64,000 bases of DNA, taken from assembly GCA_002189035.1 (NCBI GenBank), contig CM007989.1, forward strand, positions 7,812,001 through 7,876,000. Reading direction: 5' to 3'. Shown here piece by piece: positions 42,425 through 51,453 of this stretch (position 1 is the stretch's first letter; each line of letters begins with the position of its first letter). Both the position numbers and the translations under genes were made by a program. Below the pieces are notes generated by a model. The model was not told the origin of the DNA. It worked only from the letters and a program-made list of their open reading frames with translations, and searched no databases. This stretch comes from Utricularia gibba. Taxonomy: Eukaryota > Plantae > Magnoliophyta.

Positions 42425-44845
42425 GTGATAATCACAATAATGATTCCTTTTAATGTTATTTTCACTATTTTCAAATATTGGGAAAATTGTTCATCATTAT
42501 TATAAATTGATCACAAATATTTGATTTCCACTTTATTAGTATTCATCAATTTTATATAAATAATACTCATTAGCAAGTTATTTAAAAAATTGGTAAAATT
42601 AGTCCTCAATTAATCATATCTAGTTTTTCAATAATTGTAGATTAATTATACACTTAAAAACAAATTATGCCAAGTACATGGTAAACTTTGAGAATTAATA
42701 ATATAGATACATCAAATTTTAGATGATTGATTTTGTCAATGATGACCAATTACATAAATTATATTAAAAAAATTAGGACTAATTTGTCATCATATTAAAT
42801 ATTGGGGTTTTTTCTGTAATTTTATTATTTATTTATTTATTTATTTATTTATTCATTAAAAAATTGGAATAAATTTATTTAATTGGTCAAAAATTGGGTT
42901 GTTGAAATTGAAAAAAAAAAGGCTATCAGGCAGCGGTTACTTGTCCGAAGGGGCAAGACATTGCCTGCTTCGACTCTTCACATTTAATTTAATGGAATTC
43001 CTTAATTAATTAATGGTTCGAACCCCCGTCACATCCATATTTTAAAATAATATTATTCATAATTTTTCTTGTATAAATGATCTTTTTTTCTAAATCTTAT
43101 CTTCATTTAATTTTTAGCTCATAAGTCGTTTGGTAGTCGATTTTAAATGATTTTAATAAACGATGTTGTTTAGTAGATGATTTTAACAAGATTTTTGCTT
43201 TAATAAATAATTTTATATAAGATGAAAGAAAAATAAGATATGGGATTATTTTATTTAAAGAATGGTGTTATATTTTGTTTTGGACAATAATATTTCTAAA
43301 ATAATTATGTAATTACCTTCAATAGCTTTTTATATTACTTTAATTATAATTTACATTCTAACAAATTTCTTCTCTTTTATCATTAAATATATTTTTAATA
43401 CATATCAATCAAATATATTTTTTTAAATAAATAACACTTAAACATACACTTAATGAAATTTTAGCGTACTTAATCCATCTTTAAATACATTTACTGATTA
43501 CCCGCTTGGGTTATTAAATGGTAAAACACATCCTAAAATATGTTTAAGAAAAGTCGCGGTCAAAACTCCGGGAAATATCTTCCACAAAAAATCCCCCCTA
43601 CAAACCGCCTCAAAATATCTATAAATAAATGCTTCGTGTAATCACGTGCTCATTTGGATTCAATGGATCCGAATAAAGAAATAAATGAACATTAATTTTA
43701 AAAAATATATTTATTATTTTTAATTTTCTTCTTTTGTGGAGTGGCGGGGACGCCAGGGCATTGCTTTACTTTGCACTCACGAAACTTTAAATGCCACTCA
43801 CCGCCTCCACAAGTCAAAGACCCGCCTTTTTCCTTTCAAATATAATATCTCAATAATCAATTTCCCTTTATTTATTTCTTTTTTTTAAACAAAAATAATT
43901 TGAAAATTATTGATATATACATATATATATACAGTGTAATTAAAATAATTATAATAAATGGTAGAAGTTTTTGAAAGAAAAGTCTAATATTATATTTTGC
44001 CATTGTATTATTAATTAAATCGAATTAACATCAATTTTTTATTTTGATTAAGAAATTATTTACATACATAATCTTTATTAATAAATATCAATACTTATTA
44101 AATATGTAAATAATATGATATAATGATATCTTCTAAACCGTGATAATACACAATATTCCTAACATATTATTTTGAAACTCGTTTCAAACCGATTGTGTTG
44201 GTGCATGAAAGGATGATAGTCCGATTTGATCAAGATTCGATTCTATTTTTGAAATTCAGGATTTGATCCGATTTAATTCAAATTTATGATTTTTTAGATT
44301 CGGATACAATACTTTTTTACACAAAATTAAAAAATTTTGAAATTTAGATATTTTTTTTAAAACAATGGTTCAAACTTGAATTAATTGATTATATTAAAAA
44401 AATTAATTGAGGAGGGGAAAAAAGGAATTTGTTGATGGGCCAAAGGAGACTTGTTGGGAAAGAAAACGCAGAAAAGCAAAAAAGGGTAGGTGGAATTTGG
44501 CTTGCCGTAGGCAGCCCACCCCATCGGCGGGGCGCCATCAGCGAAAGATGGGGTTTTTTTGGGGGTCCATGAGGAGGAAACCAACAATCGAGAAACAGCT
44601 CACGCCTCCTCCTCCTCTTCTCGTGCATTCCCGTCGCTTGCTTTCATTGATGTTATCGATTTCCGTGTCAAGCAAGCATCATCGTCACCACCCAATTCCC
44701 CCATTTACTTCCAGTGGGCGATAAAATCTCTTTTGCGATTCGTTTGGTCACTTGATGGACCCATTCCTCCTCGCCTTGTGATTTACCCTTCTCCTTCTCT
44801 CTCCCCTTCATCTCTGTGTTCCCCTTTGTGTTGGTTTTCTTAGAC

Positions 44846-46784
44846 ATGGGGCAAGAGGCTGTGGTGGTGGCGGGTGTCAACATGAGGTTGAAGCCTTCCA
44901 GGCTGGGGGCTCCTCCCCCGACTTCCTTGGCGCCGGGGTTCAGGTTCCATCCCACTGATGAGGAGTTGGTCAGATATTATTTGAGGAGGAAAGCTTGTGG
45001 TAAACCCTTTAGGTTCCAAGCTGTCGCTGAGATTGATGTGTACAAATCTGAGCCTTGGGAGCTTGCCGGTATCTTGATTCATTCATGGATCTCATTCGAA
45101 TGAATTTTTTTTTCTGCAAGATGTGCTTTTGCTTTTTCATGGGTATTGTGGTGTGGTTGGTATGCACGGAAAGCTGTGGCCTTTTCTTGCTTCTTCATGT
45201 GTTTATGTGTTCTGGTCTTAACCCGACTTAGGTTCACATTCTTGTATTCAAGATTGGATTTTTACACCCGAAGAGTTTGAGTAGAATTTTGGGTTCAAAT
45301 TTGAATTGATCTGAATAATTATGTTGACGATGACGAAACCATTGTTGGATAAGATTCGAGAAAGAAGCAAAAAACTAAAATTTGGGGACAGATCTGGAGT
45401 AGCAGAACAATGGCCCTTAATTGGTTGTATTAGTTGACTGATGGGGCGCAGGGGGTCATGAGAGCTTTCACTTTGATTTATGTGATGCTCCTCTATGTCT
45501 GGCTTACCCTTGTGTTTTAAAGCTCCTATTTTTATTTGGTATGCTCTATAACGGTCCCTTCTCTATGTTAATTTGTTCTGTTCTTCTGTGTTTGTCTTTT
45601 GGTTAGACTATTCATCTCTGAAGAGCAGAGATCTGGAGTGGTATTTTTTCAGTCCTGTGGATAGGAAGTATGGTAATGGGTCTCGTCTGAACCGGGCCAC
45701 CGGAAAAGGATACTGGAAAGCAACCGGTAAAGATCGAGCTGTGCGCCATAGGAACCAGAACATAGGGATGAAAAAAACTCTTGTTTTCCACAGTGGACGA
45801 GCACCAGATGGCAAGCGAACCAATTGGGTTATGCATGAGTACAGACTTTGTGATTCTGAGTTGGAAAGGGCAGGAGTAGCACAGGTGAGACTGCAGTTTC
45901 ATCCGCAGTTCAGTGTTTCTTTCTGCTGTTTATAATGAAACCTGAAGAACGTTTTCCCTTTTCTTTTGCGGAAAAGGATGCGTTCGTCCTATGTCGAATT
46001 TTCCAAAAAAGTGGTCTTGGGCCTCCCAATGGAGACAGGTATGCCCCTTTTGTGGAAGAAGAGTGGGATGATGAGGCTCTCATGGTTCCCAATGGTGATG
46101 CTGAGGATGACATGGCTAATGGGGATGATGCCCTGCCCGACGCCCCTGGTGTCGAGCTGGTACGGTTCCCTCTTTCTCTGCAGAGCTTCGTCTAGACTTG
46201 TCTGATATTCATTGAAGCAGAACCAGTTCGGAGAGACCTTTAATCTTTGTTTCTGTAATGTTCACTCGTGTACTGTAGCAGGAGGATCAAGCTCTCACCA
46301 TGGCCCCTCCGGCGATACCCCAACCGCTTCCTCTAATGTGCAAGAGGGAGAAATCAGAAGATTGCCCGGAGTCCAGCTTTGGTCAAACCAAAAGACCAAG
46401 GCAGGAGGATCCAAGCTCCGGCCAAACGAATGGCTCCGAGGACTCAACAACGACGTGCCAGGAGCACGCCGGAAGGATGATGACGACAACCAACAAGTTT
46501 TCCCCCACCCTGCTGGAATTCCCCCTCCTCCAACCAGTAGAAGCCAAAGAGAACCCTCCAACCAGCCACCATTTCACCTTCGACTCTTCCAATCTGGAGA
46601 AGTCCGTCCCCCCGGGTACCTGAAATTCATCAGCAACCTCGAGAACGAGATCCTGAATGTGTCGATGGAGCGGGAGACCCTCAAGATCGAAGTGATGAGA
46701 GCCCAGGCAATGATCAACGTCCTTCAGTCTCGGATCGACTTGCTAGTGAAGGAGAACGACGACCTGCGACGGTGTGGCTCTTAG
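44846..46784 (+). CDS. NAC domain transcription factor (ANAC050/051/052-like), with an apparent 1-bp frameshift at 46608-46613
   Basis: Exons 44846-45068, 45607-45884, 45977-46159, 46282-46784. Motifs [65 protein letters not shown], and the C-terminal coiled coil [27 protein letters not shown]. Confidence 0.92.
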
Positions 46785-47163
46785 GGAAGGTAGCTACCTA
46801 GCTAGGGCTGTTTACCCCTGTTAGATGAGTTGGGTTTTGTGAGTTTGGTAGAAATCCGCAGGAGTTGGTGCCGAGTTCTGCTAAACCCCCCTCTTCCTTT
46901 CATTCAAAACATCAACAAACCAATGGATGCTGCCTTCCTTCTGTCAAAGTAGGGATCTTTTGCCCATTACATGAATCAGAAAACAACCATAACCACAACC
47001 CATCATCAACACCTCAAAATAGTTTTGTATTTGTTTAGCAATGAAACAGTATAGGTAACAGAGACAGTGAGCAGGCTTCCCTCCCTCTAAAGGAGGGATC
47101 TTGAACACAGATCAAGAACCAGCCACAGAAGGAAACGCAAAAAGATGGAGCAATCCACTACAT

Positions 47164-47586
47164 TTAAGAACTGGTAAACTTGGTAACAGCCTTGGTTCCT
47201 TCTGAAACGGCGTGCTTTGCCAACTCTTGAATCTCCACTACAAGCCTCACTGCAGTTTGAATCTCCCGCGAGGTGATTGTAGGCTTCTTGTTGTATCGCG
47301 CCAGTCGCGATGCTTCTTGCGCCAGTTTCTCGAAAATGTCGTTGATGAAGCTGTTCATGATCCCCATCGCCTTGCTCGATATGCCGATATCAGGGTGCAC
47401 CTGTTTCAGCACCTTGAAGATGTAGATCTTGTAGGTTTCCGTAGCTTTCTTCCCGCGCTTCTTCTTCTTATCAGCCGCCGCTGCGGAAACGTCCTTCGGA
47501 AGCTTCTTTCCTGCCGCCTTCACCTTCTTCTCCGCCGGAGCCTTTTCCACCGCCGCGGCGGGCTTCTTCTCTGCCTTGGGCGCCAT
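47164..47586 (-). CDS. H2B: Histone H2B (intronless) with an atypical alpha3-alphaC junction
   Basis: 140-aa ORF: MAPKAEKKP..., [66 protein letters not shown]. Canonical VLPGELAKH is read as [10 protein letters not shown]. Confidence 0.97.
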
Positions 47587-47648
47587 TCAACGATATGAAA
47601 CCTCGGGTGGCAATGCGATCGCGATCGGCAATCGAGGGAAAGGTTTCT

Positions 47649-47710
47649 TATTTATAGGGAACAACAGTGAATTTTGATTGGCTGAATTGGGTTCACATCG
47701 GATCGTCACA
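47649..47710 (-). promoter_or_regulatory. Histone H2B core promoter: TATA box, two CCAAT boxes, octamer-like element
   Basis: Minus-strand TATAAATA at 47656-47649, CCAAT at 47681-47677 and 47690-47686, and TGACGATCCGA resembling the plant histone octamer GATCCGCG. Confidence 0.6.
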
Positions 47711-48454: not shown

Positions 48455-51453
48455 CTACAAGACTGTGTAAGCTCTGATGACCTCAACAATGGGCGCCCGG
48501 CACAGGGGGCATTTGCCTCCTCCTCGCATCAGCTCATTCGCGCATCGAGAGCAGGCGCACATGTGCCCGCACCTGTCAAGCCAACAGGGATCATCGTCAT
48601 CATCTGTTGATGGAGGGAACTCGCGTGGCTGTGGTTGCTTACCTGTACATGAGGGCATCGATGTGGCTGTCACAGCACACGCAGCATGTGCCCTTTCTGG
48701 CAATGCACCATTTGGGGTCATCATCTGGTGTTTTGATGCAGTAATAAGAGATCAGCATCTTGGTTTTTCATGGGAACTTGAGGTGGGAGATTGGGTGTAC
48801 CGTGTTCGTTGAAGGAGCGGTGGAGAGCTGCAGAAACTTCTTGTCTGACTGATCTCTGGAGCTCCATTTGCATATCCATGCACGCTTCTAGCATCTTCTG
48901 CATGTGGTTCATTCCTTGATGGAGCTTTAACACGTCTGCCCGGAGATCGTTGATCATCTCCCACTCCTGGAAAGAAGAACGCACAAGCACCTGGTTTCAT
49001 ATCCTTGCTGCAGTAGTTACAAACTGTTCATGGTTTTTTAACTCACAAGTTCACAATTATTCATGCTGTGGCGAGACCAGGAAGGATGGTGCATCTCCCG
49101 GTGCCAAACCGGTTGTATTGGCGGGGGTGGAGGAGTTCGAGATGCCGCCGGTGTTGGGCTATCAACTGCATCAAGATGTTCCTGGCTTTGCATGAGACTC
49201 GACTGGTCTGAAACTGCCTCAGGCGACTGAGCATCATCAAAATGCAAAGGGGGTCTGCTTTGCCTTTCCACATATGACTGAATTAGCTGATCTAAGCTTT
49301 CACGAAAGCCGCTACGCAGAAGATTTGAGACTCGCCTCCTGAAGGAGACCATCACCATCACTTAAGTAACACAGATGAATGAAAAAGGAGTAAAATGGGA
49401 ATCCCACCTGTTCAGTAGTTCCCTTAGTTCCATGCTGTACACATTATCATCATCTGGGGGGTGGAAACGGGTAATCCCTTGAGATGGAAGACTGTGCACC
49501 ATTGTAGGAGTATCTGGAGAAATGTCTAGGTGATTTATTTCATATGACGTCTCAGAGCCTTGAGGTGCAGAAACGTGGCCTTCATTTTGAGATGCAAAGT
49601 CCTCAAATTGTCTGCTGGATACCGCAGAATGACTTCTATCTTCATGGATAGATACATGATCACCATGTGAATATTCTGGGCTCGATCCTTCAGACTCAGT
49701 TACCTGCACCTGCAATTCATCTCTCTCATGAAAAGGGTGTTGATTTTGACTAGAACTGTGGCCTTCTGGATTCCCACTGATTCCAGAGGCCTCTTGAGCT
49801 TCTTGATTCTCAGATCTATTTGCCAGGTTACTTCTAGAGCTACTGTTGTTATCATTTGAGATTTCCCCACGAGTAATAACTTGGCCTCGTACGATTCTTT
49901 CTAATCTGAAACGGAATCCTTCCCTGGAAACAAGTGATTCATTTAGGATGATGAGAAGCAGTCAAGAATGTGATGATTCCTAAACACAGAGCAAAAAAGA
50001 CATACCTCAGGCCAGAAACTGCATGTCTCTGTCTCAGTTGGCTTAGCTCACCAGCCGCAGCAGAAGGTGGTCTCTCTTCTTCAACCGGACTTTCATTTCT
50101 TAAGAATCTGCCTCTAAGCAGTGACTGAAAATCAATGTATACAACATCATGTTCCTGAACTTTTTCATGGAAGTCAGCTACTACACTGCATATACCTGAG
50201 CTATAGAAAAGATTATATTGATGAAAAAAGAAATCTTTTTTGTTCACTAGAAAGGACAAAGAATCTACAGGACTTAAGTTATGTACCTGAATGCGATTAC
50301 GATGAGCAAAATCTGTAACAGGACGTTGTTCCTGCAGATTTTGTATTTCTTGTTGCCTTTCTGCTTCTACTCTGACAAGCATGCTAAGGAGAGCTTGTCT
50401 ACCCCGCAATCTATGCAGGTCCCTTCCAGCATTCTCTGGCTGTGCATCTTCATTACTGGGAAGAGAAACTTCTCTAGAAAGACTATCCTGATATCTAGCA
50501 CCATTTTCTTGATCTCCCCTTTGTCCACCATGCAAACCTCTTGGTTGGCTACTCATTTGCATCCATTCTCTCACAATTCTTACCCTTTCACGCTCAGTCT
50601 CGCCAAGCAAATCTGCTCTAGAACTGTCCAAACTGCCGTTCCTGACAGTTGATGAAGCATCACTTGCACTACTCCCTGTCCATCTTCGAAGAATATGTCT
50701 TACTCTTTCCCGGTCAGTTTCACCAAGATCTGGAGATGTTTCCCGACTGGAATTCTCCTGCTCCCTGTTGCCAACCTGTGGACCTGATTGATCCGGGGGC
50801 CATGCTGAATACTCATTCTCACTCCCACTAGCACCCAGAGAAGTGCTGTGAGCGTCATTCTCCCTACTCTCTGACATACTTGTAGATGAACTTGCATTTG
50901 ATTCAACACTGTTCTGATGCCTTAATCTCCATTGCATTCTCTCACATGCACGGTTAAGTTCATGTTCATCTTCCAACTCCCTCCAACTCTGCAAAATTGA
51001 AGAGGCGCGAGAGCTCAGCCTCTCAACATTCCCCTGACGCCTAGAGGTAGGAGACTGTGATTCTTGCAAAAATGAAGAATCAAGCATGGATACAGTTTGC
51101 AAGCCTGCAAGTGCCATCAACTCCGACTCACGGCTCCTCCTCTCCCTCGTTGTGATCATCTCTTGCGCCTGGCGAGCAGCCCACCGCCCCAAAATCCTTG
51201 ATTGTTGCCGCCTCGCAGCAGAAGATTCAGCCAGGTCATCTCCCTGGAGATCAGATCTCCTTCTCCTTCTGAGAATCTGTTCTCCATCATCCTCCTCGTC
51301 TTCAGTAGTAGATGTTCTCGGTGAGTTGCAGGAACCAAAAGACACACATTCATCATAATGCCCGCAGATTAAATCCTCCAAACCCCTTTCAGATTCAGAG
51401 CGAGAGTCCCTATTCATGCTCTCGGATTTCTGGTTTTGCTGAATACCCGCCAT
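48455..51453 (-). CDS. C-terminal RING-HC (C3HC4) E3 ubiquitin ligase with long disordered/coiled-coil N-terminus
   Basis: Exons 51453-50287, 50124-50006, 49923-49408, 49338-49047, 48966-48801, 48724-48643, 48572-48455, phase-consistent. RING: [50 protein letters not shown]. Family motifs [21 protein letters not shown] and [30 protein letters not shown]. Confidence 0.93.

Follow-up and report, generated by a model that had tools for sequence, protein, structure and literature searches.

The hinge and the αC helix of histone H2B are part of the nucleosome acidic patch, carry the lysine that is ubiquitylated and are almost never altered in nature. The hinge is the tripeptide Leu-Pro-Gly (LPG), L102-P103-G104 of the human protein, where the chain turns sharply at the end of helix α3 and the proline caps αC. 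The bladderwort Utricularia gibba is known for its very small genome. Plant H2Bs that depart from the bulk form have been described. For instance, H2B.S/H2B.8 is presented as having core substitutions that are conserved, C-terminal tails that are slightly extended, greatly expanded N-terminal tails and a seed-specific clade (PMC7410336). As for the origin of small sequence changes, polymerase-theta-mediated end joining (TMEJ) in Arabidopsis has as its hallmark deletions with flank-templated filler insertions, and the fillers have been attributed to repeated priming and release (PMC10923293). Here, an H2B gene of U. gibba is reported in which LPG has been replaced by a lineage-specific, in-frame and locally templated change.

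The gene lies on the minus strand at positions 47164-47586 of the whole stretch of DNA that was analysed (64 kb, hereafter the window), and its intronless coding sequence of 140 codons plus stop was taken from the list of open reading frames. Residues 7-115 of the 140-aa product matched the core histone family PF00125 of Pfam (E 3.5e-22), the identity to plant H2Bs was 84-91%, and the solved Arabidopsis H2B chains in the PDB were matched with E values of 1e-57 to 1e-58. From ATG to stop (47586-47164) the reading frame is intact, with no frameshift, stop or lost start such as would mark a pseudogene. The stretch ETYKIY...TAVRLV, which covers α1-L1-α2-L2-α3 of the histone fold, is the same as in two H2Bs of Genlisea aurea. 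The glutamates E121 and E129 and the αC lysine K136 are also all kept. On the basis of the PDB-chain alignment and textbook numbering, we take these residues to correspond to human E105, E113 and K120, of which E105 and E113 belong to the acidic patch and K120 is the ubiquitylated lysine. A second H2B gene was absent from the 64-kb window.

Between helix α3 and helix αC, plant and solved H2Bs read RLV-LPG-ELAKHA, whereas the U. gibba copy has V117-E118-I119-Q120 (VEIQ; 47227-47238, minus strand) opposite the Leu-Pro-Gly hinge, which lengthens the junction by one residue. This placement was obtained by aligning the protein with H2B chains of Arabidopsis and human, and the DNA with the two Genlisea genes. 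A sequence-only reading of this DNA had proposed the replacement of LPG by VEIQ, the near-invariance of LPG in other H2Bs and the integrity of the remaining fold, and all three proposals held. The replacement was found both in the sequence and in contigs of public sequencing runs, and 86 of 86 codons of the fold and αC are the same at the protein level as in the Genlisea proteins. The near-invariance was examined by two word searches, one of them focused on residues 98-140, which retrieved 216 H2Bs with 230 instances of the hinge motif; 228 of these 230 were LPG, one was LRG and one LPS, and a VEIQ hinge was found in none of the 216. Diverged mammalian germline H2Bs among the matches kept LPG with the following residues changed.

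Searches for relatives of the new junction were negative in the collections covered: the back-translated junction pattern had no match in JGI metagenome contigs, and the exact 140-aa protein had none in a 15-billion-protein collection or in a gene-position index. The species seems to be poorly represented in these two collections, and the absence of VEIQ relatives there is therefore weak evidence. In the literature, nothing was found on H2B genes of U. gibba, nor anything useful on H2B αC-helix mutants.

Genome comparison with Genlisea aurea places the change in time; the gene order and the most similar tails are indicative of Lentibulariaceae. The Genlisea H2B gene M569_09073 (P0027, locus L002) stands tail-to-tail with a NAM/NAC gene, as in U. 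gibba, and this gene and its paralog M569_03796 (P0029) share a similar N-terminal tail with the U. gibba copy and encode an identical protein over the 86 codons of the fold and αC. Both Genlisea genes spell LPG as CTC CCC GGN, whereas U. gibba has VEIQ and one codon more. The change is therefore younger than the divergence of the two lineages. Over the same 86 codons, the U. gibba gene differs from the two Genlisea genes by 42-44 synonymous differences (pS 0.74-0.77) and 0 amino-acid changes. Synonymous sites are saturated between them, and 0 of 86 amino-acid changes at such a pS indicates that very strong purifying selection acted for nearly all of the history of the gene. Nothing else in the gene has decayed, and the event is therefore young or tolerated.

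The source of most of the new letters can be pointed to within the gene. As the sequence-only reading had remarked, the 10-mer GGAGATTCAA is present at 47266-47257 and again, 30 nt away, at 47236-47227 (minus strand). The 64-kb window contains no further copy. The downstream copy (47227-47236) supplies new letters, and the upstream copy (47257-47266), the presumed template, comprises the last base of the R107 codon and the codons of E108-I109-Q110. These EIQ codons are ancestral, as they are present in both Genlisea genes. By chance, about 0.4 copies of GGAGATTCAA would be expected per window, and at least two copies anywhere were seen in 5 of 100 shuffles; two copies 30 nt apart within one gene are much rarer than two anywhere in the window. 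When a random 13-mer filler was placed at the site, a local match of at least 10 nt (within 80 nt, either strand) was found in about 1 of 1,000 trials. The suggestion that the in-frame change was templated locally, from a 10-nt copy 30 nt upstream, is thus upheld with P about 1e-3. A weak candidate for a second template is the 8-mer GTAGTGGA in the H2B 3′ UTR (47154-47161, minus strand), which is identical to the initial 8 nt of the patch (47241-47234), lies 80 nt downstream and overlaps the 10-mer by GGA; taken alone, this match is near chance level. Read from the letters, the 10-mer and GTAGTGGA together could account for every new letter.

The two Genlisea genes have 9 nt (the LPG codons) where 12 unrelated nt stand in U. 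gibba, indicating a deletion and an insertion at one site. Judged from the Genlisea codons, about 9-10 nt encoding Leu-Pro-Gly were probably lost in one event and 12-13 nt filled in at the gap. For ten of these the EIQ codons 30 nt upstream would have served as the template, and the scar would have stayed in frame by chance. A GGAGA microhomology at the junction would need a GGA glycine codon; Genlisea has GGC/GGT, and the U. gibba ancestor may differ. The trace looks like that of TMEJ, or else of a template switch during replication, which would leave the same trace as polymerase-theta end joining.

Public sequencing data bear on whether the junction is real. Of twenty public runs, 19 contain at least part of the stretch, and the contigs of four of them (X1, X2, X5 and X7) were aligned. 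In X1, a DNA-type run of 2013, exact contigs cover 46709-47259 and 47257-47563, the former spanning the new codons and reaching 18 nt past them. The boundary between the two X1 contigs (depth 3-5) falls precisely on the upstream 10-mer copy, at 47257-47259. This break is probably a coverage gap, a branch in the assembly graph of that sample being the alternative. In X2, from a study of 2020, a single transcript-like contig of 600 nt (47007-47606, minus strand) matches with 0 mismatches and 0 gaps and comprises the 5′ UTR, the coding sequence and a 3′ UTR of 157 nt. In X5 and X7, no contig was found over the junction, though more than half of the words are indexed, and the record filter makes such holes uninformative. 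Among the runs examined, whose contigs drop rare variants, no contig carries a canonical allele of this locus.

The limits of the X2 contig agree with the expected span of an mRNA. The TATA box stands 43-50 nt before its 5′ end, and its other end falls 157 nt past the stop codon, just beyond an A-rich stretch. The flanks of 47007-47606 are without cover in X2, whereas X1 covers them. Since the contig is confined to the span from TATA box to 3′ UTR with bare flanks, X2 is taken as RNA; together with the run type guessed by the tool, this makes it very probable that the run is RNA. Expression of the gene, which had been put forward as a possibility from the sequence, is therefore supported by an exact contig over the mRNA span, and the gene appears transcribed. 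A lack of transcription, as a pseudogene might show, is not what X2 indicates, its RNA nature being guessed by the tool and supported by the bare flanks. In addition, three sister runs of X2 contain 0.66-0.74 of the sampled words, in line with 600/801 bases, and in two further RNA-type studies the runs contain 0.34-0.57. Across several studies dated 2013-2024, the share of the sampled 31-mers that the runs contain ranges from one third to four fifths.

Contigs of at least two other H2B copies were also recovered from these runs. Over the last 41-43 nt of the coding sequence (47166-47208) they agree with the VEIQ copy but for 1-2 differences, and beyond it they diverge into at least two distinct 3′ flanks. 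One X2 contig of this type has a word depth of 192 as against 9, though depth is not safe for ranking. Canonical H2B paralogs are present and expressed in U. gibba, and since other H2B copies occur in the same runs, the plant does not depend on the VEIQ copy.

Promoter motifs were located by pattern search. A TATA box (TATAAATA) lies at 47649-47656 on the minus strand, 43-50 nt upstream of the 5′ end of the X2 contig, followed further upstream by two CCAAT boxes (47677-47690, minus strand) and by TGACGATCCG (47699-47708, minus strand), a degenerate Hex/Oct-like element that matches the octamer at 6/8 positions and presumably resembles the type I element of plant histone promoters. Of the TATA/CCAAT/octamer promoter claimed from sequence, the TATA box and both CCAAT boxes stand, whereas the octamer is only degenerate. 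On the other side of the gene, a multi-exon NAC/NAM transcription-factor gene (44816-46948, plus strand) converges on the H2B gene. In X7, the NAC gene shows a poly(A) end at 46948, and X7 is therefore an RNA run; some 60 nt separate this end from the 3′ end of the H2B transcript at 47007. Beyond the H2B promoter, several minus-strand ORFs at 48455-51453 look like the exons of one gene, the first of them a long ORF of 504 aa that is rich in Ser, Glu and Arg (49939-51453), and the gene ending in a RING-type zinc finger (…CPLCRAPI…, 48455-48724).

The effect of the replacement on protein structure was approached by AlphaFold, with a single 36-row alignment serving for both the variant and P0028, a canonical control. 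In the control model, the helix is broken at LPG (helices at residues 108-118 and 122-140). In the variant model, a single helix runs over residues 106-129 through VEIQ, and the last 20 residues have pLDDT of about 40. The mean pLDDT values were 54 and 57, so both models are of low confidence. Low confidence is usual for a lone histone, and AlphaFold is a poor judge of mutations. The models thus give a hint that VEIQ may run the helix straight through the former hinge. The scar removes the helix-breaking Pro-Gly, makes the chain one residue longer and places an extra glutamate just before the acidic-patch E121, and αC would likely be mis-set or fused with α3.

Taken together, the likeliest reading, to which we assign a probability of roughly 0.6, is that of a young, transcribed and tolerated but probably impaired H2B copy with a repair scar. 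The gene is a genuine and apparently transcribed paralog of the replication-type plant H2B, still driven by its intact promoter, and the copy would be a recent, tolerated allele, presumably impaired or neutral in function, rather than a selected new variant. Because canonical H2B paralogs are present and expressed, an impaired or neutral allele is the most likely outcome. Against impairment, the gene carries no frameshift, stop or second damaging change, and its promoter and transcript look normal. The sequence-only reading had also named a local assembly artefact. That the true gene encodes LPG and the change arose in assembly or sequencing is hardly credible, the oddity of the change and the X1 contig break at the upstream repeat copy (47257-47259) notwithstanding: exact contigs over the new codons came from both the 2013 DNA-type run and the 2020 run, one of them spanning the whole gene, and a 9-to-12-nt replacement is atypical of read errors. 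Since X1 and X2 are independent runs, an assembly artefact is practically excluded, and that claim is dropped. Somewhat less remote, though still unlikely, is that a single cultured clone or accession carries the mutation, which would be somatic or a recent germline event and unfixed in the species, with several studies sharing plant material. All runs with the stretch stand under one organism label and may all derive from one laboratory clone, the exact junction was seen in only X1 and X2 of the four runs aligned, and the absence of secondary decay is what a very young event would predict. Nevertheless, the sampled 31-mers recur at one third to four fifths across several studies from 2013-2024, and no contig of a canonical allele was found at the locus, with the reservation that contigs drop rare variants. 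All that sets such a clone mutation apart from the preferred reading of a young, impaired copy is how old and how widespread the event would be.

A working structural H2B variant that pairs with H2A, enters nucleosomes and is kept by selection seems improbable. Its remodelled α3-αC junction and extra glutamate would alter the acidic patch, or else the surface near the lysine that is ubiquitylated. The reading frame, the whole fold and E121, E129 and K136 are kept, as this explanation would have it, the promoter is intact and the contig transcript-like, and, read from the protein sequence, the hydrophobic spacing V116/V117-I119-L122/A123 would permit a regular amphipathic helix. However, VEIQ occurs in no other H2B searched, the ortholog is canonical, and LPG is kept even by the diverged mammalian germline H2Bs among the matches. 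Moreover, the change originated as a random repair scar, the protein is one predicted from sequence, and the model loses confidence in αC. Of the two fates that had been envisaged from the sequence, a young pseudogene seems likelier than a variant with an altered acidic patch.

It is rather doubtful that bladderwort chromatin takes up an expressed H2B that lacks the Pro-Gly helix breaker, with α3 and αC fused or re-registered and an added glutamate by the acidic patch; if true, nucleosomes would have an altered docking surface, and this would be a kind of H2B variant undescribed in any eukaryote. If the protein is inert, the case would be an ordinary young gene lesion, and nothing yet distinguishes it from a recent lesion of the ordinary kind in a multigene family. 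It is nevertheless unusual enough to deserve a check by mass spectrometry or reconstitution. A transcribed natural hinge-replacement allele offers a ready-made test of how far the junction tolerates change, and the locus also provides a clean, inherited and templated repair scar in an ultra-conserved coding sequence.

In comparison with known systems, the U. gibba copy resembles the canonical class I plant H2Bs (Arabidopsis H2B.6/HTB9 and H2B.10; 7ux9, 8j90 and 8kcb) in length class, in the C-terminal ...AVTKFTSS and in its histone-type promoter elements, and differs from H2B.6/HTB9 and H2B.10 in the replaced LPG hinge and the junction that is one residue longer. Like H2B.S/H2B.8 and the short-tail H2Bs, it is an H2B paralog that differs from the bulk form (PMC7410336, PMC12536603). 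Unlike these, it has an ordinary tail, a single indel at the hinge and no known VEIQ relatives. Plant polymerase-theta filler scars likewise combine a short deletion with filler copied from flanking sequence no more than tens of bases away, for which two templates may be used (PMC10923293), whereas the U. gibba event, for which the enzyme is presumed, is natural, inherited, in frame and situated inside a histone coding sequence.
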